Shown: positions 5,639 through 51,295 of the stretch, piece by piece
Layout: each line of letters starts with the position of its first letter
Position numbering within the stretch: position 1 is the first letter of the stretch
Assembly (NCBI RefSeq): GCF_036321535.1
Contig: NC_087449.1
Location: 38,874,001 to 38,938,000, forward strand
Direction: 5' to 3'
Source of the DNA: Camelus dromedarius
Taxonomy: Eukaryota
Length of the DNA stretch: 64,000 nt
Program-made: the position numbers and the translations under genes
The notes under the pieces: model-generated
Seen by the model: only the letters and a program-made list of their open reading frames with translations
What the model was told of the DNA's origin: nothing
The model's database searches: none

Positions 5639-5755
5639 ATACTCTGGTTTCTCTTCAGATCGTATAAATCTTTCGCCTTTTACTAAAGATTTCCGTGGAG
5701 AGGAACAATTCTGAGTTTTTGCCCAATTTTTTGAGGCCTTGCTTTTAGCAAGGCT
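5639..5755 (+). ncRNA. RNU5: U5 spliceosomal snRNA gene, intact
   Basis: ATACTCTGGTTTCTCTTCAGATCG start, invariant loop 1 GCCTTTTAC, Sm site AATTTTTTG (5725-5733), perfect 3' stem GCCTTGCT/AGCAAGGC; no poly(A) or TSD; position downstream of ARMH1 matches the human RNU5D locus as recalled. Confidence 0.97.
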
Positions 5756-10412: not shown

Positions 10413-11225
<813 letters not shown>

Positions 11226-11393
11226 TTAGCACCTCTTACTGTGCCAGGCGTGAGGGGAGCTGGGCTGGTGGCTCCTCAGCCCTGCTCTCCTGGAGCTTGT
11301 GGTTAAACGGGAGGGCCATAACTATTACTTCCTAGTTAGGGACCCATTTGTATTTTTACACACAAGAAACCTCTTTGAAAAAATCAAACATTT

Positions 11394-11508
11394 AGCTCTA
11401 CATAAGGCCTCAAAAAAATTCACTACCAATTTTCAAGTGTTTCTTCTCCATGGAAACTTTTGCTAAAATATAAAAGATTTCAACAAATTGGATAGAAACT
11501 CAGATGTG
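11394..11508 (-). pseudogene. Degenerate U5 copy (inverted duplicate in the left arm)
   Basis: Exact reverse complement of the 12036-12150 copy. Confidence 0.75.
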
Positions 11509-11562
11509 CAGTCCTTCTGTGCCCATCTTCCCAGATACTAGTGGATCTCCCAACACTTGCAA

Positions 11563-11715
11563 TTCAGTGTAGCAAACAGTGTGTTCAGAACAACATTTAC
11601 CCCGGTGTAAAGAGAAAGGAACCACAGAGAGGCAGAGCTAGAAGGGGGCAGGATCAGATGGTAAGGAGATGGTACACCGGGATAAATGTTGTTCTAAACA
11701 CACTGCTACACTGAA
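11563..11715. repeat. Inner hairpin / MITE-like inverted repeat
   Basis: ttcagtgtagc(aaac)agtgtgttcagaacaacatttaccccggtgta (11563-11609) pairs with 11673-11715, with 2 mismatches and a 4-nt bulge. Confidence 0.85.
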
Positions 11716-11807
11716 GGCAGAACTTAGAAACCAGTTGTTCCCCAGCTGGAGAGTCAAGGCCTCCCATCTACACTCACTCCGAGGGAAGATGTTTCCCTGA
11801 CTAGATC

Positions 11808-11829
11808 ATCTGCATACCAGAATGCAAAG
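11808..11829 (+). promoter_or_regulatory. Decayed octamer + SPH (DSE) remnant of the second U5 copy
   Basis: ATCTGCAT-ACCAGAATGCA parallels ATTTACAT-ACCCACAAGGCA of the intact gene, at about -228. Confidence 0.5.
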
Positions 11830-12035
11830 TAGATTACATTAGAAATATTAACAGTATTACCTGTTCGAACAACGAAAATGAACCTTTTATTTTCATGTCA
11901 GGTGATTTTCCCCAGTAAGAACATGTTTAGGGGTATTTCTCTATAATGGAAGGAAAGTTTTTGTCGGTAGTTACAAAGGCATTGCAAGTGTTGGGAGATC
12001 CACCAGTATCTGGGAAGATGGGCACAGAAGGACTG

Positions 12036-12150
12036 CACATCTGAGTTTCTATCCAATTTGTTGAAATCTTTTATATTTTAGCAAAAGTTTCCATGGAGAA
12101 GAAACACTTGAAAATTGGTAGTGAATTTTTTTGAGGCCTTATGTAGAGCT
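12036..12150 (+). pseudogene. Degenerate full-length U5 gene copy
   Basis: ctgagtttct...aaatctttt...tttta...aaagtttccatggagaagaa...AATTTTTTTGAGGCCTT is collinear with U5; Sm site kept, loop 1 mutated. Confidence 0.75.
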
Positions 12151-12278
12151 AAATGTTTGATTTTTTCAAAGAGGTTTCTTGTGTGTAAAAATACAAATGG
12201 GTCCCTAACTAGGAAGTAATAGTTATGGCCAACTTATATTTTTTTGAAAGGGTTCTTGTTAAGTGTAATGTAAGCTAT

Positions 12279-12314
<36 letters not shown>

Positions 12315-12772
12315 GTGTTTCTTATCAAATTGGGGAAGTTCAGTTGGTCATTTTTCCTCCTACCCTGCCCCGGGTACTTTACCACCGCAAAGCTAGGAAA
12401 GCCTGCATGGCACATTGGTCCATCCTCTAGGTCTCCCAGAGTTGGATGACACCTTAAGAGAGGTTGTTTTGGATCTGCTCCCAGTCAGAGGCGTGGCTGG
12501 GGACAGGATACTGGGGCAGCTAACCTTTTTACTGATGCACTAAGCGAAGTCTCGAAGGCTCGAAGGCTCGTGGGCATCCCTGCAGGGCGCTGCACTCAAC
12601 ACTTCACTTCAGTTTAAAACTGCATGTTTCCCTGTTTCCTGGGGTAAATGTACATTCTTCCAAAAATCCCTTTCACAGATTTTCTGGCAGAGGGGCCGTA
12701 GCACAGGAATAGACAGCAGCAGCCTTGGACAGTTGCAGTCAGTTAAGGAAAGAGTGGCAAACATAGCCAAGT

Positions 12773-12841
12773 GTACTCTGGTTTCTCTTCAGATCACACG
12801 TCTTTTGCCTTTTACATTTCATGGAGAGGAATATGTGTGAG
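12773..12841 (+). pseudogene. 3'-truncated U5 copy
   Basis: gtactctggtttctcttcagatc and loop 1 GCCTTTTAC (12807-12815) intact; small deletions break the flanking stem; no Sm site; L1-like sequence follows. Confidence 0.85.
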
Positions 12842-13130
12842 GTTACCTTATTTCTCATCTAAAAGGGAAAGTTTCCAGTGTTTCATCTATTAGATATGGC
12901 GTTTGCTATAGTTTTTTTTATAGCTAGCTCTTATCAGATTGAGATTCAATTTTTCAAACTTTTTCCTATTAAGATAATATATGTGCATTCCTAGATGGCA
13001 CATTTTTCTTTTTATATACTGGTAGATTCAGTTTGCTAATATTTAGTGTAGAATTTTTGCATCTATGTTCATGAATAAGATTGGTTTCTCGTTGGCATGC
13101 TGTCACTGATATTAAGATTACACTAACCTT

Positions 13131-13825
13131 CCTCCTACGCTGCTGGTGGGAATGCAGTTTGGTGCAGCCACTGTGGAAAACAGTATGGAGATTCCTCAAA
13201 AGACTAGGAACAGACTTACCATATGACCCAGCAATCCTGCTCCTGGGCATATATCCAGAAGGAACCCTACTTCAAAANNNNNNNNNNNNNNNNNNNNNNN
13301 NNNNNNNNNNNNNNNNNNNNNNNNNNNNNNNNNNNNNNNNNNNNNNNNNNNNNNNNNNNNNNNNNNNNNNNNNNNNNNNNNNNNNNNNNNNNNNNNNNNN
13401 NNNNNNNNNNNNNNNNNNNNNNNNNNNNNNNNCACTTGCAGCAACATGGATGTTCCTGGAGACTGTCATTCTAAGTGAAGTAAGCCAGAAAGAGAAAGAA
13501 AAATACCATATGAGATCACTTATATGTCAAATCTAAAAAAAAAAAAAAATACAAAACAGAAACAGACTCATAGACATAGAATACAAACTTGTGGTTGCCA
13601 AAGGGGTGCGTGTGGGAAGGGATTTCAAAATGTAGAACAGATAAACAAGATTATACTGTATAGCACAGAGAAATATATACAAGATCTTGTGGTAGCTCAC
13701 AGCGAAAAAAAATGTGACAATGAATATATATATGTTCATGTATAACTGAAAAATTGTGCTCTACACTGGAATTTGACACAACATTGTAAAATGACTATTA
13801 CCCAATAAAAAAAATGTTAAAAAAA
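13131..13825 (+). mobile_element. Young 5'-truncated L1 (ORF2 C-terminus plus 3'UTR)
   Basis: Perfect 17-bp TSD aagattacactaacctt (13114-13130 and 13826-13842); [19 protein letters not shown]1 ORF2 peptide; A tail. Confidence 0.92.
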
Positions 13826-14014
13826 AAGATTACACTAACCTTAGAAAATACATTGGGGTGTGTACTCTCTTCTCCTAATCTCTGAGAGAGCTTGTGTAAG
13901 ACTAGAATTTTTTCTTGAATGTTTGATAGACTTCTCTGAAGCTTCTGATCTTATGGGAAAAATTATTGATTCATTCTGTTTAATGCTTAGAGGACTATTT
14001 TAGTTTTCTATTTC

Positions 14015-14057
14015 TTTTTTTTTTTTTTTAGTTTTTTTTTAGGTTTTTTTTTTTTTT
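14015..14057 (-). mobile_element. Orphan poly(A) insertion with TSD
   Basis: Interrupted T run flanked by a 14-bp direct repeat tagttttctatttc (14001-14014 and 14058-14071). Confidence 0.7.
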
Positions 14058-14249
14058 TAGTTTTCTATTTCTTGAGTCTATTTTGGTAAATTATATTTTC
14101 TAGCAGTTTTCATCTAAACTTTCAAACATACTGAAAAAACTTTCATTATATCATTTAAAAAATCATTTTAATGAATTAGCATCTATAATGTCTCCTTTTA
14201 TATTCTTCATATTGATTATATGGCTTTTTTTGTTTTTGTATCAGTTCTG

Positions 14250-14520
14250 TTTGCATCCAAATCCCATGAGAGTAACACAGATGGATACCTGTTTATGCAG
14301 TGGATTGCATTATGAAGAGGAACCCTGATTTCAGAGAACCTGAATGTTACATAGTAGTCAGTAAGCATGCCTGCCCTTTGCTGTAAAGGGGAAAATGACC
14401 TTTATTTTCTGAAGCTGTTTGCTAAAAACATCCTTGAAAAGATAGTCTGAAACAAAAAGCAGTTAGTATTTCATTTACAAGACAGGCAGAAATGTGAGCG
14501 ACCTATAGAGAACTGTGTCT
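14250..14520. mobile_element. MER21/MER77-like ERV LTR fragment
   Basis: gctgtttgcta...aacatccttgaaaagatagtc motif, recalled from this LTR group. Confidence 0.4.
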
Positions 14521-17500
14521 TAGGATTATCTTTCTTTTGTTAGAGGTAATCCTTTAGCAGACATTCTTGCTTTGTTCTTAAATTTAGGGAGAAAGCATTC
14601 ATTCAGTCTTGCTATAATATTGTTAATTGTATAATATTGTTCATAATATTATATAATAGTGTTAATATATAATGTTAGCTGTAGACTTGTGTGTGTGTGT
14701 GGATGCTTTTTATCAGGCTGGGGAGGTTCTTCTCTAGACCTATTTTTCTGGGAATTTGTAATCATGAGCAGGTGTTGAATTTTGACACAGGAATTTTCTG
14801 CACTGATTGATATAATAATGTGATTTTTCTTCTTTAGCCTGTTAATTTGGTGGATTAAATTGAGTGATTTTTGGAAATTGATCCAGCCTTGCATTCCTGG
14901 AATGAGCCTACTTGGTCTCAGCCTGTTCTTCCCAATCACAGAATCAGAGTCACTCTCCCAGGAGAAAGATCCTGGTGCTACCCCTTCTGGTGCTTGGCAC
15001 TTTGGGGACAGGCCTCCTGGGGGAGTCCCTTTCCTCTGTGGACCAGTCTGATTCAGAAACAATTGGCTAGTGCTTCTGGGCCACTGCTTCTCATTCATCC
15101 ACATCTTCCCAGGTAGCCCTTGCAATCCCAGCTACCCACCCCAACCTCTGACTGCTCAGGTATGGTTCTAATTTGGAATCACAGAGCCAGCAACATTCTG
15201 GAGGGAAAGGGACCAGCACACTGAGTCTCCCTGGCTTCCCCCAAACACTCCCACCTGGACAAAAATGCAGCCTGGGGTGTCTCTGGCACTTGGCAGCCAT
15301 AGCCTGGTACCTGCAACCTCCAAGTCTTTCTTACTTGTTCTCTTATTGTTTGGTTGTGAAACCTTTTCTTCCTTTTTCTTGAATTAGTGCCGCTTGATTT
15401 TGGGGTCTGAGTGATTGGCTCCTCCTCATATCTGACTATAGGGGCCCGGTCAGCTGCCGCACAGCTCTCAGTAGTAGCTGGGCTCTTCCCAGGCACAAGC
15501 TGGCAGCACCTTAGTGCCAGGATGCCCTGGGGAAAATGCCTGCAGCAGAAAGTGAGTTGGTGAACATTCAGAGTAAAAATGAATGGATGCAGATATTTTA
15601 ATGAAATTTCCCTGACCACCAATGGCATTCTCTGCCCACATGGGACCAAGTGCTCCAGGAGACAAATATCTGGTTCTGCCTGTTCACACTGTCCTAAATA
15701 CTTGAGCCTTCGTTGATTATTTGCCTGCTCCTTGATTATGTATGGGGGTCCTTGGGAAAATGAAAATTTACTCACAGAGTCACTTTTGATCAAGTTTTAA
15801 AATTCACAGCTGTCACTGTTTACACCCAAAGCAGAAGTGCTAGTCCCTGCCCAAATGTCTCCACAGGAACCACAGCCAGCGTCAGCTCTCTGCCCTGCCC
15901 TAGTTACTCAGTGAGTGGACTCATTCAGAAAGCGAAGGAGACTGCCACCTTTGGCAGCTTTGCCCGAAGCCTGTGATGCTGACAACCCGCAACTGTCCTA
16001 AATGGAAGCAGTCACTGATTTATTTATTGATTGATTCATTCGTAAACAACATACTTAGTGAGCATCTTCTCTGTGCCAGATCCCTGTGCTAGGGCTATGA
16101 GGAAGACGAAGATACAATCCCTGCCCCTTCAGGATGACAGTGTCTAATGGGGAGTACCAGTAAACAAAGTGGCATGTATGAAGTAGTGTTGAAAGAACCA
16201 CAGGAACTTGAAGGAAGCCAGGCTGGGGTGAGGGCAAGTTGAGGGGGTGGGGGTGGCGAATCAGGAGAAGGCTTCCTTGGAGACGGTGGCACGTGAACTG
16301 GCAAAGCCATGGGGAGACGAGAGGGACTGGAATGAAGAATGTGGCGAGTGCCATGTTGAATAGTGTGTGCCCCATTGTGGCCAGGCAAGCAGGGAGTCGG
16401 CTGGGACGCAGGGTGGTGGGTCATGGAGTGAGAGCTAAGCCTGTGGAGGTGGGCCAGCCGCAGCTTCTGGCTTCTACCCTTCTGCTAACTACCCTACAGA
16501 GCAGATGTTTTCTCATCTTTCTTTTCAGAGAAAATGAAGGCTCAGAAAGGTTGACTAGCTTGCCCAAGGTCAAACAGCTAAGTAGAGGAATAACTCTGTT
16601 GGATTCCAAAACTCATATTCTTCACCACTAAAATGAGCTCTACTGCCTCCAGTCTTGGGGAGGACTAGGAGACAGACTGTGTGGGCATCGTGCTGGAGAG
16701 ATGGAGGTGGGTGTCGAGGTGAGAAATACAAAGATCCGAATTATAGTGGTGGAGACAGAATGGAGTGGTGGGGACAGATCTGAGTAATGTTAAGGAGGCA
16801 GGGTTGACTGGTCTTGTTAGAAGTTGGCTGAAGGTGGGAAGCAGGAAGCAGTGATGATTACCTACATGTCTATCCTGGGTGATTAGCTGCTTTTTGCTGA
16901 GATTGGGACCTCGGAGAATGAAAGGCTTGGAGCAGGAATATCAGGAGCCTAATTCTGAACATGTCCAGTTACATCCAAAGGGAGATGTTTAGAAGGCAAA
17001 TGGATGTCAGGGTCAGGCTTTCAGGCTCAGGAGAGAGGTCTGAGCTGCAGCGCAGTCACTCAGCCACTCTGCCCTTCATCCACAAAATGGGAATAATAAC
17101 GGTGCCCACTGAATCAGCTGATTGTGAGGATTAAATTAGTAAAGAGCTAGAGCAGTACTTTGCATACAGTCCATACTCTATAAAGGTGGGCATTTGTTGT
17201 TTCTAGCATCATAGGTGGTAATTAAAACCCTGGGAGTGGATGAGGGACTCGTGGAGGACTAGGAATGAACAAAGCGCTGAGGAGTAGTTTCCAGAGAGAG
17301 AGGGGAGGAAGCCAGGAGAGAATGTGGGGTCTGGGAAGGACAGGACCAGAGTATTCAGGGAGGAGGGTGTGATCAGGTGGGTTTGCAGGTGAGAGTTCAT
17401 GCCCAGTGAGGCTGAGAAGCAGCTTGGCGCCCGTTCATTGGACAAATATCCATTGGGTACTTGTAAGGCTGCAGTGCTGGTGCCGACTGAGACAGCAGTA

Positions 17501-18403
17501 AACAAAACAGATGCCAGGAGCGGGCCGCTGACCCGCAATGGAAACTGCAGTGCAAGGGGAAAGAGTCCTCCCATCTGAAGAGGAACCAGGGAGCCCAGAG
17601 CCTGTCAGCACAGGGAGAAAGCTCCATGATCACATGTCTAATAATGAAGAAACCCAGCATGAAGACTGCCCAGGGAATTGCAGAGAATAGGAGACGGAGC
17701 AGTAGCAGCTGGCTTAGTATTCAGACATGCCTCAGAAATGGTGCTGCACCTGGGAACTGTGGTTTTGTCATGCAACCATTTCCAGGACGCTCAGCACTCA
17801 CCAGGTTTGTTTTACAATTCTCTGCTCCTAGAGCCTGGGAAAACCAGTGTCCCTGTTCTTTCTGTTCACATCCAGACAAGACTGTCACCTGCTGGCCACA
17901 GATGATAAGTGTGCCTCAGTGCCGTCCATACACACAGTTTTGCTTGCTTTTCTAGAGTTGGAGTATGAGTAACTTGGGCAAATCACATGTGGTGAGGAAA
18001 AGACCAGTCAGGCATCTTCCTGACCAACTACATTCTGTCTCTGATTCCTGTACATTCCGTCACCTCTTTTTACCAAATCCTATTCAAAGCCCAATGTTGA
18101 AACGTTACAAATATATTTTATTTTAAAAAGCCAGGCAACAAAGCAGTTAATGTTATGTGCTATGGTGGTAGAAGTGTTGCTGAATCAGTGATTACTAGGG
18201 TGTGTCTTCCTCTGGTATCTGCTCTTCTGGGCCAGTCTCACCAAGTCCAATTAGCCTGTGTGCCAGCGCTTGAAAGTGTTCCTGTCACCAGAGTTAGAAC
18301 ACCTCTGCACCAGGTGCAAGGGTGGGGGGTGGGGGGACAGTATCAGGCCCCGGGCAGACACAGGTGTTTAGGGCCAGGCAAATGAGACAATTAGAAACAA
18401 GTT

Positions 18404-18503
18404 GCTCCTGGCCGCTCTCCCTTCTGAGGCAGACCACATTCTGTCTGTGGAATGTGTATCTCTCTAAATAAACTTGCTTTCACTTAAAAAAAAAAAAAAA
18501 AAA
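18404..18503 (+). mobile_element. Retroposed polyadenylated LTR-like 3' fragment
   Basis: 82-nt ERV1-LTR-like R sequence with AATAAA (18467-18472), A run, 11-bp TSD agaaacaagtt (18393-18403 and 18504-18514). Confidence 0.75.
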
Positions 18504-18534
18504 AGAAACAAGTTTTTCCCAAGGACTTTGTATT

Positions 18535-18682
18535 AAAAAATGTTTTTAATTGTTTGCTTGCTTTGGGTGGAGGTAATTAGGTTTATTTATTTATTTACTT
18601 TTAATGGAGGTGCTGGGGATTGAACCCAGGATCTTGGTGCCTGCTAAGCACACACTCTACCACTGAACTATACCCTCCCTCC
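18535..18682 (-). mobile_element. Camelid tRNA-derived SINE (Vic-1-like)
   Basis: SINE head on the minus strand; TSD aggactt(t/g)gtatt. Confidence 0.9.
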
Positions 18683-18819
18683 AGGACTTGGTATTTATAA
18701 AAAAAATAAAACTCTGGATGACTGTATAATAAAGCTTATAAATGCTAAATAGAGTGTTGTGGTTGAAGGGCTCATATAATTTTGGGGAAATGTATCTTTT
18801 AAAAATATTCAGTAAATTT

Positions 18820-18974
18820 CTTCTTTTTTTTCAGCCTCTGTAGAGACTGTCAAAAATTGCCAATGCCGACTATATTAGAAGTCATCATGGTGGGGTGTTA
18901 GGAAAAATTTTCAATTAGCAATAATGGCACTCGGATAAACCTCATTGGCTATGATACTGCCACTGTGCAAAGCT
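18820..18974 (-). pseudogene. U4 snRNA processed pseudogene, full length plus A tail
   Basis: Minus strand reads AGCTTTGCACAGTGGCAGTATCATAGCCAATGAGGTTTATCCGAG...AATTTTTGACAGTCTCT; CpG decay; 19-bp TSD aaaaatattcagtaaattt (18801-18819 and 18977-18995). Confidence 0.95.
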
Positions 18975-19749
18975 AAAAAAATATTCAGTAAATTTTTATG
19001 TGAGACTATCCTTTGGTGTCTGAGCCTTGCGACTGTTGTGCAGTGAAGTTACCCAGGACCTCTGCCTCTTCCACAGGAGGGACAGCTGAGACCACTCCTC
19101 ATGGCAGCGCAGAGGAGGAAAGCAAAGGCACAAGGTTCTAGGGGGAAAAGCTGTAGGTTTAAAAATGAGATATTGTAGTATTTGCTTGACTCTGTGAAGG
19201 GCATGAAGCTGAGAAAACATAATTTTTAAAAATATATTTTATTGTATTAATAATGATGTTGTATAACTTCAGGTTTTGACTGCTGCACAAAACTGGTAAA
19301 AACTAAGAGAGTCTTGTTCTCGGAACACTGGAGAGACAGGATAGTGTGGTAGTGAGGAGATGGGAGCAGCAGTCAGAATGCTTGGGTGTGATCCATAACT
19401 TTCCCACTTAGCATCTTTGAGACTTTGGACAGGTTATTTAATTGCTCCATGCCTTAGTTTCCTCATCTGTAAACTGGGGATGATAATAGTACGTACTTCT
19501 CAAAATTGTTCTGAGAGTCCCAGGAGATGATGAATAGCTGAGAATAGTGCCTGGCAAATAGTCAGCATCAGTCACTGGTAGTGGTTACTAGTTATTATTA
19601 CTAGTATTATTGGTGCTGGAACAAAGCTCTAGGACGGCACGGACTTAGTTTCATTTGTCACTATATACTCAGTGCCCAGCCCCGTGCCTGCTTCTGTCGA
19701 ATAAGTAAATGAATAAGTTAAAAACTAAATAATTTAAAAGTAAACCAAC

Positions 19750-20700
19750 AAAGACCATTATCAAAAAAGGGAAAAGAAAACAACAGAATGGGAGAAACCA
19801 TTCCAGTATCCAAAATATATAAAGAACTCTTTACAGTTCAACAGCAAAAAGACAAACAACTCAATTTTTAAAATGGGCATGAGACTTGAACAGATATTTC
19901 TCCAAGAAGGAAACATAAATGGCCAACAAGCACATGAGAAGATGTTCAACATCTTTAGTCATTTGGGAAATGTAAATCAAACCCGCAATGAGGTACCATC
20001 ACTCCATACCAACTAGGATGGCTATAAATATATGAAAAAAGGATGATAACAAGTATGGGCAAGGAATGTGGACAGACTGGAACCCTCATACATTTCCAGT
20101 GGGAATGTAAAATGGTTCAGCTGCTGTGGAAACAGTTTGACAGTTCCTCAAAAGGTTAAACAGAATTACCATATGACTTGGCAATTCCATCCCAAAGAGT
20201 GAAAACAGGCACTCAAACAAATACATGGACATGTATGTTCATAGCAGCACTATTCACAATAGGCAAAAGAGGGAAACAGCCCAAATGTCCACCAGCAGAC
20301 GAGTGGAGAGACAAATTGTGATATATGCATACAATGGAATATTATTCACCCACAAAAAGAATGAAGTACTGATACACGCTACACATAGATGAACCTCAAA
20401 AACAGACTAAGCAAAAGAAGCCAGATACAAAAGGTCACATACTGTATGACTCCATTTATCTGAAGTATCTAGAATAGGTGAATCCAGAGAGACAAGATTG
20501 GTGGTTTCTAGGGGCGGAGGGGAGGGGACGGTGAGCAAATGTTTAATGGTACAGAGTATCCTCTGGGGGTAGCAAAAATGTTTTAGAGCTACACAGAGGT
20601 GGTGGTTACACATCACTGTGAATGTATACTAAATGCCACTGAATTGTTTATTTTAAAATGGTTAATTTTATGTTATATGACTCCTCACCTCAATTGAAAA
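19750..20700 (+). mobile_element. Old L1MB/MC-type 3' end
   Basis: aaaatgggcatgagacttgaacagatatt...tacaatggaatattattc...gtggtggttacaca L1 3' motifs. Confidence 0.8.
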
Positions 20701-20730
20701 ATGCTTTTGTGAAGAAAAAAGAAGAAAACC

Positions 20731-21037
20731 AATCTAAAAAAAAAAAAAACCATAAATACAAACAGAAACAGACTCATAGACATAGAATACAAACTTGTGG
20801 TTGCCAGCAGGGGAGGGGGTGGGAAGGGAAAGACTGGGATTTCAAAATGTAGAACAGATAAACAAGATTGCACTGTGTAGCACAGGGAAATATATACAGG
20901 ATCTTGTGGTGGCTCACAGTGAAAGAGAATGTGACAATGAATATATGTATGCTCATGTATAACTGAAAAATTGTGCTCTACACTGGAATTTGACACAACA
21001 TTGTAAAATGACTATAACTCAATAAAAAATGATTAAA
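20731..21037 (+). mobile_element. Young camelid L1 3'UTR fragment
   Basis: Near-identical to 13520-13825; flanked by aaaaaagaag(a/t)aaac. Confidence 0.85.
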
Positions 21038-21557
21038 AAAAAAGAAGTAAACTGAATCTGTGATCAATTTCTAAATAAATCATATTTCTTAATAGTAGGA
21101 ATCTACATAACTTCACAGATCTAAGAGCCTCAGGAGAATTAACAATGATGTTCGTGCCCACTGCGAGTCTCTCCAGGTCCCTGGGGGACAGGGGAAAAGA
21201 CGTCACACATTCAAAGACTTGTCAGTGTGTGTACTGTTTGGTCACTTAGGGCCACTGCTTCCCTGCACTAACATTTCTAGTGGATTCCATCACATGAATG
21301 AATGCAGTTTGCTCAGCCATTAATCCTGCTGTGGTGCTTCATGCCTGATAAGCCACACTTCCAACTTCACTATAGGAAACACGATCATTTCATGAGCAAG
21401 TCAAGTTAATCATAGGTTCTAGGTCCATTAGAAAAAAAATTATTCTCCAAATGACCATTTTTCCAAATTCACATTTTCATTTTACCATAAAATTATTTTG
21501 TATAGGTATTTGTTAAATTTGTTAAATTTGTTAAATTTTCTGCAATGTTTATTGGAT

Positions 21558-22112
21558 GGTACAGGGGTTTTAAAATATGTCCACAAAGTTTTTAGGAGGT
21601 TTCCTTTCGAGAGGTGGAGCCCAATTCTCTCCTCCCCTTGAATGTGGGCTCAGTGACCAGCCTCTAAAGAACACAGTGAAACAGAAGTGACAAGTGCAAC
21701 TTCTGGGATTAGATTATAAAAGATATTGAGCTCCCTTTGCTCGCTCTTGGATCACTCACCCTGGGAGAAGCCCACGGCCATGTTGTGAGGACACTCAAGC
21801 AGCCCTGCAGAGAGGTCCACGTGGGAAGAACTGAGGCTTCCTGTCAATACTCAGCATTAACTTGCCAGGCGGGTGAATGAGCTGCCCTGGAAGTGGGTCC
21901 TCCAGGCCCGGCCATGCCTTCAGATGCCCGCAGCCCCACCTGACCACTTGACTGCAACCTCATGACACAAATGGGTGGCCCTGAGCCAGAAGCACTCTGT
22001 CAAGCTGCTCCCAGAGTCCTGACCCACAAAAACTGGGGGAGATAATAAATGTTTATTTTTTTTTATCCACTAGGTTTTAGGGTAATTTGTTATAAGCAAC
22101 AGGTAATGAATA
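21558..22112 (+). mobile_element. MLT1 (E/F-like) solo LTR
   Basis: gagaggtggagcc...cttgaatgtgggc...gagataataaatgttt...gtaatttgttata motifs. Confidence 0.65.
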
Positions 22113-24332
22113 TAGATGAACTGATTTAACTGCTTTTGTAGATTTCTGCAAAGTTTGAATATAATGGCTTTCATTTTTGTCTTCATAGCATTTTAAGGAA
22201 TCTTCATTTGTCTCTGCCCAAGCTGTCTGTAGCTGCCGGGGTGGGAATGGGAGCAAGGAGGGGGTCCTGGTCCTGCGTGGCCTAGACCGCCTACCCATCA
22301 TTGGGAAGAGGGGATGGGGAGGGGGTGGGGCAGAGAAAGGGAGGGTAAGGGCCAGAAAAGGGGGCCAACGAAGGGCAGAAAGTGGGTACTGAGGGGCAGA
22401 GAGAGGCTGATATCCCTGAGGATGCTGAAGTTGTAGCTTCTCCCAGCTCTCCTAGGCCCTACCAATACAACCAAGAGGAACTGCATACACTTTAGAAATT
22501 TTTAAAGGAAACATTTTCAGTAAATTGGTAATTTGGCGAATTGGGCACTCAGCAAATTGGTCATTTAGCCACTTGATTTTTGGCAAGCATACATTTGGCA
22601 AATTAATTTACAATGATTAGCCTGCTTCTAATTGTCATACATAGTAATTTTTATGTTCCTAAGGTAGTAATTTGTAACAGATACTAACATATTTACACAC
22701 ACACACACACACATATTTCAAATTCCCATCAGAACTAATTTCTCCTTTCAAAAAACTTTGTGACTTTGACATTTCTTTCCTCCGGGGAGGGAGAGCAGTA
22801 AGTGAATACTTCTGTGGCTTTAGACTGCTTGTCATGATTAAGTCCCTGCCCACCACTAATTCCTGGAACAGCAGTCCTCCCTGGGAGGAAACTGCCGTTT
22901 TTCACTTCACAGCAATTATAAATGGAGATAAATTCCAGGCAGGATCACTTTGGAGAAGTCCTCCTTTACTTTTAATTTTGACTCTTTTAGGTTAAATGGG
23001 ATCATCATTAAAAGAAATTCTGAAATCTTAATTCTATGAAAAAAAAAACACACACACAACAAAACCCTCAGAAATTTGCAGACGTAGGCCTCAAAACCCT
23101 TTCTGCCGCAGTGGGGACTAGAAAGTCATTACTTGGCCATGGTTTCCTCTTCCACTCTTTTTTAAGAAGCTGGAAGGGCAGGGCGTTCCCCACGACCTTT
23201 GACGTGGGGCTCCCTGACCCACCCCTCTTCCAGGGCCACCTGCATGGGTGTGCAGGAGATGTCATGTTAGGAAACCCAGCTCTGGCAGGCAAACATATTT
23301 CAGGGAACTGCATGAAAACATTGAGACAGGGGAGAAAAAGGAAGAAAGAGAAGCTTATCTTACCTAGACAGACACAGAGCCACTGCTGCACACACGCCCC
23401 AGCTCCCACACGTCCCACTGTAGTGGGTTTAAAACTTGGCCACAAAATTACTTGACCCTCCCCACCATCGAGATGCAGGGTCTACGTGCTTCCCTGGAAT
23501 CTGGGCAGGAAGTGATGCTGTAACTTCTGAGGGTAGATCAAAAAAGGTCCTGCAGCTTTGGTCTGGAATGTCTTGGGAGTTCGCTCTCAGCTGCCCGGTT
23601 TCAGAATCTGGCCATGGAGCTGAGAGAAGCCTAAGTGACAGGGAGAGGGCACAGGTGGGTGCTGCAGCTCACAGTCCCAGCTCTGAGTCCCACCTTCAAG
23701 ATCCAGATGATTCCAGCTGCCTTGTGCTGCTCAAGGCAGGCGCCTGGGTGGGGCGTTTACCCCGATGCAAAATTTAATGGAGGGGCCAAGAAATTCAGTA
23801 ATTGAGATGGATACATTTTAATGCAATTTAAAAACTGAATGCAAAAAATATTCATGAAGAACAACCTATCAAAATGCTAGATACAAACAGGATCAGTCAG
23901 AGTGCCACGTGGAGCCACACTGGAGCCTGAGACAAAAGGAAAAGTCAGTAAGAGTGATCCTCACTAGCCTCCCTCTGCTCCCGCTGTGGCCCCTGCTGTC
24001 TTCCAGGGGAGGCCCCAGGCATCTTGGAGCAGAGATAATCCATCTTTGCTGTGTCCTATTCAAATTCCTGACCGACATACTATGTGAGTAAAGCAGTGGC
24101 AGTTTTATGAGTTTTGATTCGGGTGGTTTGTTATAAGCAATAGGTAACCAGAACGCCCACCCTCTGCTCTAGAGGCTTTACCATCTCCTACTTTGCTTCT
24201 CTTTTCCCTCCTCCTCTGAACCCTCTGCCTTAGCCCTAAGAACACTCAGGAAATAAAGAGTCATTTAAGACACACAGCCTCCACTTGGCCATCTGGGCTG
24301 AAAAACTAGGTTTGTAGGGATTTTTTTTAGAT

Positions 24333-24401
24333 TTTTTTTTTTAATGGAAGTACTGGGGGTTGAACCCAAGACCTCACACAAGCTATAACACCCCCACCCC
24401 C
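24333..24401 (-). mobile_element. Internally deleted Vic-1-like SINE
   Basis: taatggaagtactgggggttgaacccaagacctc followed directly by the head end. Confidence 0.65.
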
Positions 24402-26479
24402 GTAAAACATGATATTTTAAATTTTATTCCCAATATGATCACTGCCAGTACAAATTAGGGTACACACAATTCAGCCATCCCAATTTATTCATTCAACAAA
24501 TATTTAAGAGCCTCCTTTTGCCAGTGCTCTTTAGGCATTAGGGATACAATGGCGAACAAAGAAGATGACTCTCCAGGAGAGCTGACTTTCTAACAGAGGA
24601 CAGACAATAAACAAATAAATAAGGTAATTTCCGAAGGAGGTAAGTGTCATGATGTGATGTGATGGCGGGAGACCTGGGAGGGTGGTGGGAGGGACAGGGA
24701 AGCTTTATAGAGAGCGGTTGGAAGGCCTCTCTCAGAGGTGATGTCTGAGCTGACACTTGAAATTTGAGAAGTTGACCATCAACCCGAGGTCTGGGGGAAG
24801 CACCTTCTAGAAGCAGGCCATAGCAGGTGTTTAGATTTCAGTCTAGGTGCACTGGGAAGCTAAGGAGTGACGTCTAGTTTATATTTCAAAAATGATCATT
24901 CTGGCTGCCATGGGAGAGTGGATTACAGGGACCCAGAGTGAAAGTGGAAAGATAAATTAGGAGACAGGACAGGAGGGTGGATTAGTTTAGGGTGGTCACA
25001 GCGAGGGTAGAGCCTAGAGGACTTGATAAGGATGGGATGGGGTGGGAGGTGAGAGAAAGCAGGTCGTCTGGTATCAGTCCTACGCTTCTTACTTGAGCAA
25101 TTGAGTTGGCAGTGGTACCTTTTACTGAAAATAGGAGAAAGAACATGTTTCGGAAGGAAAATCAAATAGTCTTTTTTCGGCTAGAAATTTCAGATGCCTA
25201 TTAGACATTTATGGAGATATCAAGACTAGAGAAACAGACTTGGCAGCTGAATCTGTGACACACATGTGGAATGGGAAGCAATGGGGCTAGACGAAATCAC
25301 CCAGGGAGAAGGTGATAAAGAGATGGGACGTAGGCTGACTCCACAGTGTGGTAGAGAAATAAGAGAAACCAGTAAAGGAGGCATGGCAACACCAGCTGGT
25401 AGGAGGAACACCAGAAGCGATGTCACAGAAGCCAAGAGAAGAGAGCGAGTTGCTTTTTGACCAACTGGGTTAAGAGCAGCTGAGAGATCACGTAGGGAGA
25501 AAGTGGGAAAATGAGGTGCTGGAGGGGAACTTGGGGTCAAAGAGGGGTGTGCATCCCTAAACACTGTAAGTTAATTTTACGTTTTTTGAGGGGGACAGTC
25601 TTTTAAATCTATTTTAATCCATACATGACCAAAGAGGGGCTCTTTTTGAAGCTGTGAGATATGGAGCATATTTGCATGTCAGTGGAGATGAATCACCAGA
25701 TAAGGAGAGAGCGGGAGGTCTGCGGGAGCGAACTTCAGAGGATAAGCAGAAGTAGAGGAGGTGGTTGTGCCAGGAGCAGGAACACTGCGCTGTAATGGGA
25801 AAGAGGGCAGAGGACGTGGGTGACGTCGGGCAGCGTGGGATTTGGAGGTAGGAAGTTCTCCACAAAAAAGGAGGCGGGGTCGTCTCTTGGCTCCTCCAAC
25901 CACGGGCCCCACTGCAAGGGGAAGGGTCGCCAGGGCTGCCGAGCCTCTCCGCCGCCTATTTTCCCCAGACTCTCCCTGAGGGTTGCACTTTCCCTGCATC
26001 CTTCTCAGGGGAAGGACATCAGCCCATCCCCACCAGCACCACCACCACACACATGCAGCCTGAGGGGTAGAGGGCACAGCCTCCGTACCTTCCTTCTCCC
26101 AAACCATTCCTTTTTCTCCTCAAACGCAAACACAAACAAAACTCCAGGACTTAGGCATAGTACTTGGCACACCATAGCTGTTCAATCAATATTTGTTTTT
26201 AAAAAAACAAACCAACTCCGCCCATAGAGTTAGTCCCTTCCGTTACATCACCCGCTGCCCCTGAATGTTGCCATCGTCCTGGGGGCTGGGGGGCTTCACT
26301 TTGTACTTAAAATTTGGTGTCCTCAAACTCAGAGAAATTCATCTCTAATTTTCTCCGGTTACCCCCATTAGGACATCTAAGAGCTGTGAGACCTTCCCTC
26401 CCCCGCCTTTGGAGCAGATTCAGTGGAAACTGAGCCCCGTATTCCCGCCCTTCCCTTTCACTCCACCGATCGTGTGAAA

Positions 26480-26498
26480 TAGTCCCCCCTAGTGGACG
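26480..26498 (-). promoter_or_regulatory. Candidate CTCF site
   Basis: Minus strand reads CGTCCACTAGGGGGACTA, matching the CCACYAGGGGG core. Confidence 0.45.
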
Positions 26499-29020
26499 AT
26501 CGCTGCATATGCATGCTCTATATTCCCAGTCACACGGAGACTATTTTGAAGCGCCTGGTAAAAACGAATTTCTTTCATTCAACAGACATTTCCTGAACAC
26601 CTGTTATGAATCTGGCATATCTGAAATGACTTTAAGGTGCACAGTTTCACGGTTATCACACCAGAGACATTAAACCAAAAAGGAAGAGACAAAGCTTCAT
26701 GATCCTGCCGCCTCTGCCAGTGCTGGTTGTTATGTAAAACGCAGAGGGGATTGGACCCGATGTGGGAGGACGCTGAGCCCGTTCAACTCTGGAAGGGTTC
26801 ATCAGCAAAACTGAGGCTGAGGCATTTTTTCATAAATCTCTTCAACAACCTTCTACTGAGCACTGCCCTTTATATGCCACGCCCTGAACTGCAAAAAGAT
26901 GAATCAGACCCAGTTGCTGCCCTGGAGCTGCTCAGAGGGAAAGGCATTTAGGCAAGTGGTCACTAATACAGCATGTATGTGCGGTCCTCACTCCTTCCAT
27001 CCCTCCCTCCCTCACTCAACAAACACGTACCGGGGACCTAACCCATGCTGGGCACTGTGCTGGGGACACAAGTTACAAAACTATGAGAGCTGCACCCTAA
27101 CTGTGCACAGTCTGCATGCAGGCAGGTTACTACGCTGGAGATGACGGCTCCAGTGGAAGGAGCTACTGGAGGGGAGGAGGGCACAGGAGGAGGTACCAAG
27201 GGAAGGAGGCTGGTATTTGGGCAAGGGTTGAAGTCAGGTCGGGGAAGGACTTAGAGAAGAAATGCTGACGCTGAGATGTGATGATGAGGAGGAATGCTCA
27301 CTTTGTCACGTGGAGGTGGGGCGAGGGGAGGGAGGTCTCGGCACCATCCAATCCAGTCTCCTCTGGGTTGTTTGTTTAAGTCTCTGACATGATTCCACCA
27401 CCAGGTCACCCCCTACTCCAATGCCAGTAACAACTCGGCAGCTAGGCCTGACCTTGACTTAGGTGCCTCCAACACTCCATCCCCTCACAGGCAACTCCTC
27501 CCCAGCTAGGAGGCATTATTCCCACTGGAAATCAATTCCAACAACTTCTCAACATGGCCGGCCACGTACCCCCTGCAGGGGTCAAACAAATACAAAGTTG
27601 ACAAGAAAGATAAGGAAAGATAAGGCTGGCTTTCAATTTCAACACTGCCTTCAAAAAAACAATCTAGACCGGGAGTGAGCCTCCAGGCCCTTGGTGATCT
27701 TCCTCAGAATCTCGCTTGTGTACCTTAACCCTGTACCTGCCTCCTCCTTTGGCCTCTCCCAGGATTCCTGGACCTGGAGCTCAGCCTGGCATCCGGGACA
27801 CAGGAGTCACCATATCCAGTGACACCCAGACCCATCTTGTTTGCTGGGCCTCTCTGCTCTGGCCTCCTCGGTGGGCCTGTGCACCCTGCCATGTGCCATC
27901 TCACTCTCCACACCCAGGGGGTTCCTAGTCCCGTCTCTTTTCTCTCTTTCTGGGGCCTCTCTATCCAGCTGGATCAGCACATTCCATTCTGTTGTCTGAA
28001 CAACCCTAAGGGCCTCCCAGCTGGCCTCCAGCCTCAAGCCTCCCTGTGGCTCTGGCCCGCCCAGCACACTAGTCCCCGGGTAGTCTTCCAGAGGCGGGGC
28101 TTTCCTTTTTCCATTCGCCTGTTCCTGGGTCACTTTCCAATGGCCCCACGCTGCCTACTGGAAGGAGTGCCCACCACTCCATCTGGCGTTCAGGGTGCTC
28201 TGCCATCTGGTCCTAGCCTACCTTTCTAGGTCTTCCTGGATGGAGACCTCTACCAGACCTCCACCAAATGATCTCGCTGTGATTCTCCAGACACATCTTG
28301 TACTTCCCTATGTCTGGGCCTTCATTTACACCATCCCCCTCTCCAGAATGCCTTCCTCCACTTTCTACCTTCCCAAGTCCTTCCCATTCTCAGCTCAAAC
28401 ACCACCTCCTCAGCGAACCCTTCCTTGATCTCTCCTGTTGCAAACAGGTTCTCCCATCTCTGAATCACCGCAGGAGCAGGGAAGGATGTAACATCCTGGA
28501 AGCGCCCGCCACGTGCTGCATGTTAAAAGCACAGGCTCTGGAGTCAGATGGCTCTGGTTTGAGTCTAGTTAGCTGTGTAACCATGGGAAGCACACTTAAT
28601 CTGCTGGTGCTTCAATGCTGTAGCCTGAAAAACACAAAAATGCTGATCCCCAGCATTCATTCATTTGAACATTTGAATAGCTAATATGTGCCAGAATCTG
28701 TACTCCTGTGGTTTTTTTTGAAATTAAATGGAACAATGCATGGAAAGTGGCTGGCACATAGGTGTACTTGTAAATGAAAACTGATTCATGCTGCCATTGT
28801 CCAATCTAGTTTCTAAGAAGAACAGCCCTCAGGGTGATTTCTGTCTGGAGGGAAAGCACCACATAGGACTGACAACCAGAGCCAGCTCTGGACCCAGGCA
28901 GACTCTAACAACTGTGAGAGCACCATGTGGCTGATTCCAAGCACAGAACATGACTGTCATTTTCTGAACAACTTGCCCATCAATACTGAGCCAACACCTT
29001 CCATCTGCCGAGGCTATCTA

Positions 29021-29251
<231 letters not shown>

Positions 29252-30130: not shown

Positions 30131-30271
30131 CATTTATTTTTATTTTTATTATTTTTTGGGGGGGGGAGGTAATTAGGGGTTTTTAATTTATTTTTTAATG
30201 GAGGTACTGGGGATTGAACCCAGGACCTTGTGCGTGCTAAGCATGTGCTGTACCACTGAGCTATTCCCTCC
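30131..30271 (-). mobile_element. Camelid tRNA-derived SINE inserted in a MIR
   Basis: TSD ccatcat(c/g)tt; MIR motifs on both flanks. Confidence 0.9.
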
Positions 30272-37390: not shown

Positions 37391-37527
37391 GGGGGAGGGT
37401 ATAGCTCAGTGGTAGAGTGCCTGCTTAGCATGTACAAGGTCCTGGGTTCGATCCCCAGTATATCTGGTTACATAAATAAATAAATAAATTTACTGTACCC
37501 CCAAAAAACCCCCAAACCAACAAACAA
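37391..37527 (+). mobile_element. Camelid tRNA-derived SINE (Vic-1-like)
   Basis: gggggagggtatagctcagtggtagag head; TSD aaaa(g/a)tcc(a/g)tgatg. Confidence 0.9.
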
Positions 37528-51172: not shown

Positions 51173-51295
51173 TTTTTTTTTTCGGGGGGGGGAAGTAATT
51201 AGATTTATTTATTTCTTTGGTGGCTGTACTGGGGATTGAACCCAGGACCTCACGCATGCTAGGCATGCACTCTACCACTGAGCTATACCTTCCCC
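51173..51295 (-). mobile_element. Camelid tRNA-derived SINE (Vic-1-like)
   Basis: ggggattgaacccaggacctc...ctctaccactgagctatacc. Confidence 0.88.

Follow-up and report, generated by a model that had tools for sequence, protein, structure and literature searches.

A 250-bp inverted repeat in an ARMH1 intron shared by camels and alpaca, and its probable origin by template switching on the camelid stem

Results

The ARMH1 intron and its inverted repeat

The window, a stretch of 64,000 nt from Camelus dromedarius, contains coding exons of ARMH1 on the minus strand, and an 18-kb intron of this gene (11145 to 29134) is host to a long inverted repeat whose features are collected in Table 1. The coding exon adjacent to the repeat is 100% identical, across its whole length, to the ARMH1 proteins of alpaca and C. 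ferus. The original prediction had placed the left arm about 170 nt from the acceptor of coding exon 6; the distance is correct, and the exon is the seventh coding block when isoform X1 is mapped by tblastn. Repeat search and pairwise alignment bore out the predicted inverted duplication of about 250 bp with one mismatch, the arms of the dromedary being reverse complements at 249 of 250 positions, with an A at 11540 set against the complement of the C at 12004. BLAST found no copy of either arm other than its partner in the 64-kb window. The arm motif, sought in metagenome contigs as a trace of camelid host DNA, gave no match there, and neither did exact look-ups of short ORFs across the inner junctions.

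Table 1. Coordinates in the window of the inverted repeat, its U5-derived parts and the neighbouring exon
Feature	Position	Strand	Basis or remark
ARMH1 coding exon; acceptor 170 nt from left arm	11019..11144	-	ORF and tblastn mapping
Left arm, derived inverted copy of 11981-12230, camelid-specific	11314..11563	-	Outgroup homology from the exon side ends at 11313
Copied U5-like body in derived arm, without everything upstream of the PSE remnant	11393..11507	-	Rfam 29.3 bits
Spacer between long arms, 417 nt	11564..11980		Aligns to whale, goat and stoat
Second templated insertion, inverted copy of about 11677-11715, left arm of hairpin I2	11564..11605		Repeat search and BLAST; absent in outgroups
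TGTA microhomology, return to ancestral sequence	11606..11609		Homology resumes at TGTAAAGAG; TGTA also ends the inverted copy
Ancestral source of short copy, right arm of I2	11673..11715		Present in stoat at the orthologous place
Octamer-like (DSE-like) motif ATGCAAAG, -215 of U5-like body	11822..11829	+	Motif scan
PSE remnant, TAGTTAC + 5-nt insertion + CATTGC	11968..11985	+	Resembles the conserved ATAGTTACCATTGCTG block of intact U5 genes
Right arm, ancestral segment, template of the duplication	11981..12230	+	Collinear with spacer and right flank in single-copy whale, goat and stoat
Degenerate U5 snRNA body, ancient pseudogene	12037..12151	+	Rfam 29.3 bits; orthologues across Laurasiatheria by nhmmer

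Other small-RNA-like sequences were also seen in the window. A U4 snRNA match lies in the same ARMH1 intron (18835-18974, minus strand, 93.8 bits) and has a counterpart in alpaca (L005, 44080-44219, 101 bits), and no U4 match at the gathering score was found in the goat, whale or stoat loci. Six matches to the tRNA model, at 37-47 bits (736-807, 1719-1790, 18605-18677, 30199-30270, 37397-37466 and 51221-51292), are most likely copies of tRNA-derived SINEs rather than tRNA genes.

U5-derived sequences

Each arm contains a whole but degenerate U5 snRNA body with its Sm site, as had been predicted from the letters. The entire Rfam U5 model (positions 1-117) was aligned in both arms by cmscan, at 29.3 bits (E 0.066) against a gathering score of 40 bits for RF00020, and in these alignments the U-run of the Sm site is intact, while loop I reads UAUAUUUUAGC versus the conserved CGCCUUUUACU. 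An nhmmer profile made from five intact U5 genes recovered both copies (E 8.6e-6), and scored the orthologous U5-like sequences of whale, goat, stoat and alpaca at 17-25 bits. Because the Rfam score is below threshold, the invariant loop I is altered and the sequence is degenerate in every species examined, we classify the U5-like bodies of both arms, on sequence criteria, as a pseudogene and not a variant gene. The degeneracy extends to all of the outgroups, indicating an old pseudogene that is common at least to Artiodactyla and Carnivora.

Remnants of a promoter precede the plus-strand copy. The octamer-like ATGCAAAG at -215 may be compared with ATTTACAT, which the intact U5 gene of the window carries at -220, and the PSE remnant with the ATAGTTACCATTGCTG block found at about -63 to -51 in the five intact U5 genes; the latter match was made by eye, the arm row of the MAFFT alignment being shifted so that the blocks are unpaired there. 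The duplication breakpoint, 11980|11981, falls inside the PSE remnant. Both observations agree with the earlier suggestion that the plus copy keeps DSE- and PSE-like sequence upstream and that the breakpoint cuts through the latter.

Two further U5-derived sequences were observed nearby. An intact U5 snRNA gene at 5639-5755 (plus strand, Rfam 115 bits) has, besides its conserved PSE block, an octamer-like motif at -220 and sits directly past the last ARMH1 coding exon, 6 kb from the repeat; it has orthologues in alpaca, goat and stoat, and in whale as a copy of 73 bits with an altered 5' end. The other is a fragment at 12774-12842 (plus strand, nhmmer 31 bits) comprising the 5' two-thirds of the body, and since orthologues of this fragment were found in alpaca, goat, whale and stoat, the locus is an old cluster of U5 copies. 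Presumably the human RNU5D-1/RNU5F-1 genes also lie near ARMH1, at 1p34.1, an assumption to which we attach no weight as evidence. The block that holds the fragment, 12650-13083, has one orientation in camel and stoat and the opposite one in goat and whale, indicating that a further, separate inversion took place in the lineage of ruminants and whales.

Distribution among camelids

The ARMH1 loci of other assemblies were retrieved through the ARMH1 protein. The window is 100% identical to C. dromedarius GCA_036321535.1 (L006). The original prediction had proposed a search of other camelid assemblies, and the repeat was found in those of alpaca, dromedary and Bactrian camel and also in that of C. 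ferus: the arms match at 250/250 positions in C. ferus (GCA_000311805.2), at 249/250 in C. bactrianus (GCA_048773025.1), its one difference lying at 12216, and at 243/250 in Vicugna pacos (GCA_048564905.1). All four junctions are alike in the four species, and the four-way alignment crosses them with substitutions only; within the arms and spacer, it contains species-specific substitutions. Among Logan contigs from other sequencing runs, two match the window exactly. One of the two stops at 11539, one base ahead of the arm mismatch, which is the de Bruijn branch point expected if both arm variants occur in those reads. Contig L001 ends 24 nt into the arm, off the exact k=31 graph break point, and is given no weight here.

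Because structure and junctions are identical in alpaca and three Camelus species, the repeat must predate the split between Camelini and Lamini, which is placed at 11 My by fossils and at about 25 My by a mitochondrial molecular clock (PMC1939714). These comparisons put the origin of the repeat on the camelid stem, before camels and llamas/alpacas parted, and the same shared junctions overturn the earlier view that the duplication is very recent.

Ancestral state and junctions

Whale (Mesoplodon, L008), goat (L007) and stoat (L009) served as outgroups, and the inverted repeat was not found at the orthologous locus of any of them. Each has a single U5-like sequence, in the plus orientation of the right arm and collinear with the spacer, and it is only the left arm and the 42-nt piece that are missing in outgroups, the right arm and spacer being present. 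From 11606 onward, the spacer aligns as ancestral intron and old U5 promoter region. These alignments support the plus (right) copy as ancestral and the minus (left) copy as derived, which is the polarity originally proposed. They also favour the earlier opinion that the arms are not a transposon, as the right arm and spacer are ancestral; no target-site duplication was found, nor, in the 64-kb window, any other copy of the kind that a DNA transposon or MITE might leave.

Outgroup homology followed from the exon side ends at 11313 and picks up again at 11606, at TGTAAAGAG. Between these two points, the outgroups hold a unique segment of about 720 nt that camelids are without; whale and goat are 80% identical across it, and stoat has it too. 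In the outgroup alignments, reverse-complement copies of nearby ancestral sequence thus stand in place of ancestral DNA, which is the pattern expected of a template switch. The short copy retains an ancestral AAACA that its source lost later in all camelids. A transposon was also considered for the small hairpin I2, and was ruled out by the presence of the right half in stoat as ancestral sequence. Microhomology amounts to 1 nt (T) where the two copied pieces meet, 4 nt (TGTA) where the original sequence resumes and an ambiguous 0-4 nt at the outer, first junction, lengths of 1-4 nt being short enough to occur by chance.

Divergence of the arms

To compare the arms with their surroundings, dromedary-alpaca differences were polarised by the outgroups over 5,096 flanking sites, which assigned 23 changes to the camel lineage and 36 to that of alpaca and left 54 ambiguous; total divergence was 2.2%. 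Over the 500 nt of arms, 6.8 changes would be expected in alpaca and 4.3 in a camel. Alpaca has 7, every one confined to a single arm; dromedary has 1, C. ferus 0 and Bactrian camel 1. In camels, the shortfall is of marginal significance (Poisson 0.013-0.07, binomial 0.03-0.12), and fewer changes have accrued on the camel lineage overall. Sites at which both camel arms had changed together were not seen, with about 2 expected under unbiased conversion.

In every camelid, the two members of the short pair are set apart by a 4-nt deletion and two substitutions, implying that some time went by after the event before the lineages split. Against these 3 differences, the long pair has 0 that camels and alpaca have in common. 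If one event is assumed, with faithful copying and without conversion, such an outcome has a joint probability of at most 8e-4; leaving out the indel raises this bound to 7e-3.

Two side observations concern neighbouring positions. In the alpaca orthologue (L005) of 11677-11680, the source arm of hairpin I2 has the T-to-C state of the copied arm, unlike the camels, a state that arose by parallel change or by conversion over a very short tract. The poly-T tract at 12276-12313, just outside the right arm, varies in length across dromedary, C. ferus, C. bactrianus and alpaca.

Predicted RNA structure

The ARMH1-sense RNA (minus strand) of 11290-12254 is predicted to fold into an uninterrupted 250-bp stem, with a minimum free energy of -589.5 kcal/mol and a z-score of -44.8, and the mismatch of the dromedary arms becomes a G.U pair in this RNA. 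The modelled fold is thus in line with the 250-bp stem that had been anticipated for the ARMH1 transcript. Intronic inverted repeats that form duplexes are expected substrates of ADAR, and A-to-I editing by ADAR would be the likeliest consequence of the predicted duplex; Dicer products or an effect on splicing are possible outcomes of the model.

Discussion

The arrangement of the locus can be explained by a short series of steps. An ancient dead U5 copy, with remnants of its PSE and octamer, would already have occupied the intron before the lineages of camelids, ruminants, whales and carnivores diverged. Later, on the stem lineage of camelids, one complex event may have removed about 720 nt of unique intron between present 11313 and 11606, the gap being filled first by an inverted copy running from 12230 down to 11981 (250 nt) and then by a second one, of about 42 nt, that ran from about 11715 to 11677, after which synthesis would have returned to the original template at the TGTA microhomology. 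The resulting pattern would correspond to a '1-4-3-2' order of the four-point template-switch model (Loytynoja and Goldman; Walker et al. 2021, PMC7954356) with two copied fragments, both taken from the same strand and in the same direction, and the U5-like body would have been a passenger. Serial template switching of this kind could take place during replication or break repair, a stalled fork and break repair being indistinguishable from sequence. We consider it likely that the repeat is a fixed, camelid-wide structural variant produced by a single template-switch event, and that its long arms were afterwards probably homogenised by gene conversion.

The near identity of the long arms bears on the second part of this reading. 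It is probable, judging above all from the contrast with the short pair, that arm-to-arm gene conversion kept the long arms alike, at least up to the divergence of camels and alpaca, and the simplest reading of the short pair is that 42 nt were too short to join in conversion. The short-pair differences could also be copying errors, or the short piece could derive from an earlier, separate event. The latter possibility leads to a history of two separate events without gene conversion, in which a deletion with the 42-nt inverted copy came first and the 250-nt copy was later inserted at the same junction, shortly before camel and alpaca split, its arms having drifted since, slowly in camels. In agreement with such a history, all 7 arm differences of alpaca are single-arm changes on the alpaca lineage, as in a neutral expectation, the camel deficit of arm changes is only marginal and no site is changed on both arms. 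However, it requires that two independent inverted templated insertions abut at one nucleotide, on the same strand and in the same direction, so that one serial event is the more economical explanation, and we regard the two-event history as unlikely.

A different explanation for the arm identity in Camelus is that the hairpin has been kept by selection, with conversion or selection removing arm mutations because the dsRNA is functional, either as a hairpin-RNA source of small RNAs or as an editing- or structure-dependent modulator of the adjacent ARMH1 3' splice site. Consistent with this proposal, C. ferus has arms of 250/250 and the other camels have arms of 249/250, against an expectation of about 4 changes, and the lone dromedary change preserves pairing as G.U in the sense RNA. 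If it were true, a perfect 250-bp hairpin would have stayed intact in Old World camels for more than 10 million years owing to functional intronic dsRNA. However, the alpaca arms decay at the neutral rate, the camel statistics are weak and the arm is a dead pseudogene copied through a mutational accident, making selection a distinctly improbable cause.

Near-perfect palindromes are a known class of artefact, and the original prediction had named misassembly as a real alternative, but a fold-back chimera of a long-read assembly would hardly recur in four assemblies of four species, one of them the 2012 C. ferus assembly made by SOAPdenovo from short reads only (PMC3514880), nor would it account for species-specific substitutions in arms and spacer or for a 417-nt spacer of ancestral sequence, and we treat an artefact as effectively excluded. 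The 249/250 identity and the superficial resemblance of inverted arms to TIRs might suggest that the dromedary lineage acquired the repeat very recently by fold-back duplication, or that the structure is a transposon bounded by long terminal inverted repeats, readings that retain next to no credibility given identical junctions in alpaca, a right arm and spacer that are single-copy ancestral sequence in the outgroups, and a locus with neither a target-site duplication nor a further copy in the window.

A single template-switch event, as preferred here, would make this locus a clean natural example of a large two-fragment template-switch rearrangement, for which the outgroups give a minimum age and allow the ancestral state and each of the three junctions to be recovered. 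The locus indicates that an inverted repeat of 250 bp, perfect and with 417 bp between its arms, can last well over 10 million years in the mammalian germ line. Spacer length is known to matter for the stability of inverted repeats, and the 417-nt spacer probably explains why such a repeat was tolerated and persisted for so long; a spacer of this length would also render cruciform extrusion unlikely. The locus holds two warnings for annotation, namely that near-perfect palindromes are not always assembly artefacts and that near-identical arms are an unreliable clock.

Comparison with known systems

The U5-like bodies recall the variant genes and pseudogenes of vertebrate U5 snRNA, such as the human RNU5A-F family (PMC12165858), in having a U5-derived body, an Sm site and remnants of a PSE and octamer. 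Unlike the variant genes, the camelid body scores below the Rfam threshold, has an altered invariant loop I and is degenerate in every species examined. As an inverted repeat, the locus resembles the hpRNA loci that yield endo-siRNAs in Drosophila and mouse oocytes, which are likewise long inverted duplications of pre-existing sequence that can fold into a hairpin; the camelid repeat differs in that its arm is without a plausible target beyond U5-like sequence and in that it sits in the intron of a host gene. Intronic inverted pairs of Alu or other SINEs edited by ADAR are similar in lying within one intron and in being predicted to form a long intramolecular duplex in pre-mRNA. In contrast to Alu pairs, the camelid arms are not copies of a transposon, and their predicted duplex is perfect over 250 bp, whereas that of Alu pairs is imperfect.

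Sex-chromosome palindromes, in which GC-biased gene conversion from arm to arm maintains identity (PMC3723533, PMC8981503), share with the camelid repeat an arrangement of inverted arms flanking a unique spacer, and an arm identity above 99% across species that are about 2% diverged in the flanks. Their arms measure kilobases to megabases, whereas those of the camelid repeat are 250 bp long, autosomal, intronic and gene-free; conversion is only suggested in camelids, and the alpaca arms have diverged.

Further parallels are template-switch mutations and complex rearrangements of the FoSTeS/MMBIR type, in which, as here, ancestral DNA is lost and its place is taken by copies of sequence from close by, in reverse complement and in 1-4-3-2 order, and a new perfect inverted repeat is produced; the 1-4 nt shared at the camelid switch points may be the microhomology of such events. 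Compared with the short-range cases described in PMC7954356, the camelid event is far larger, having copied 250 + 42 nt for a loss of about 720 nt, and it is further distinguished by having two copied fragments and by being fixed in a whole mammalian family.
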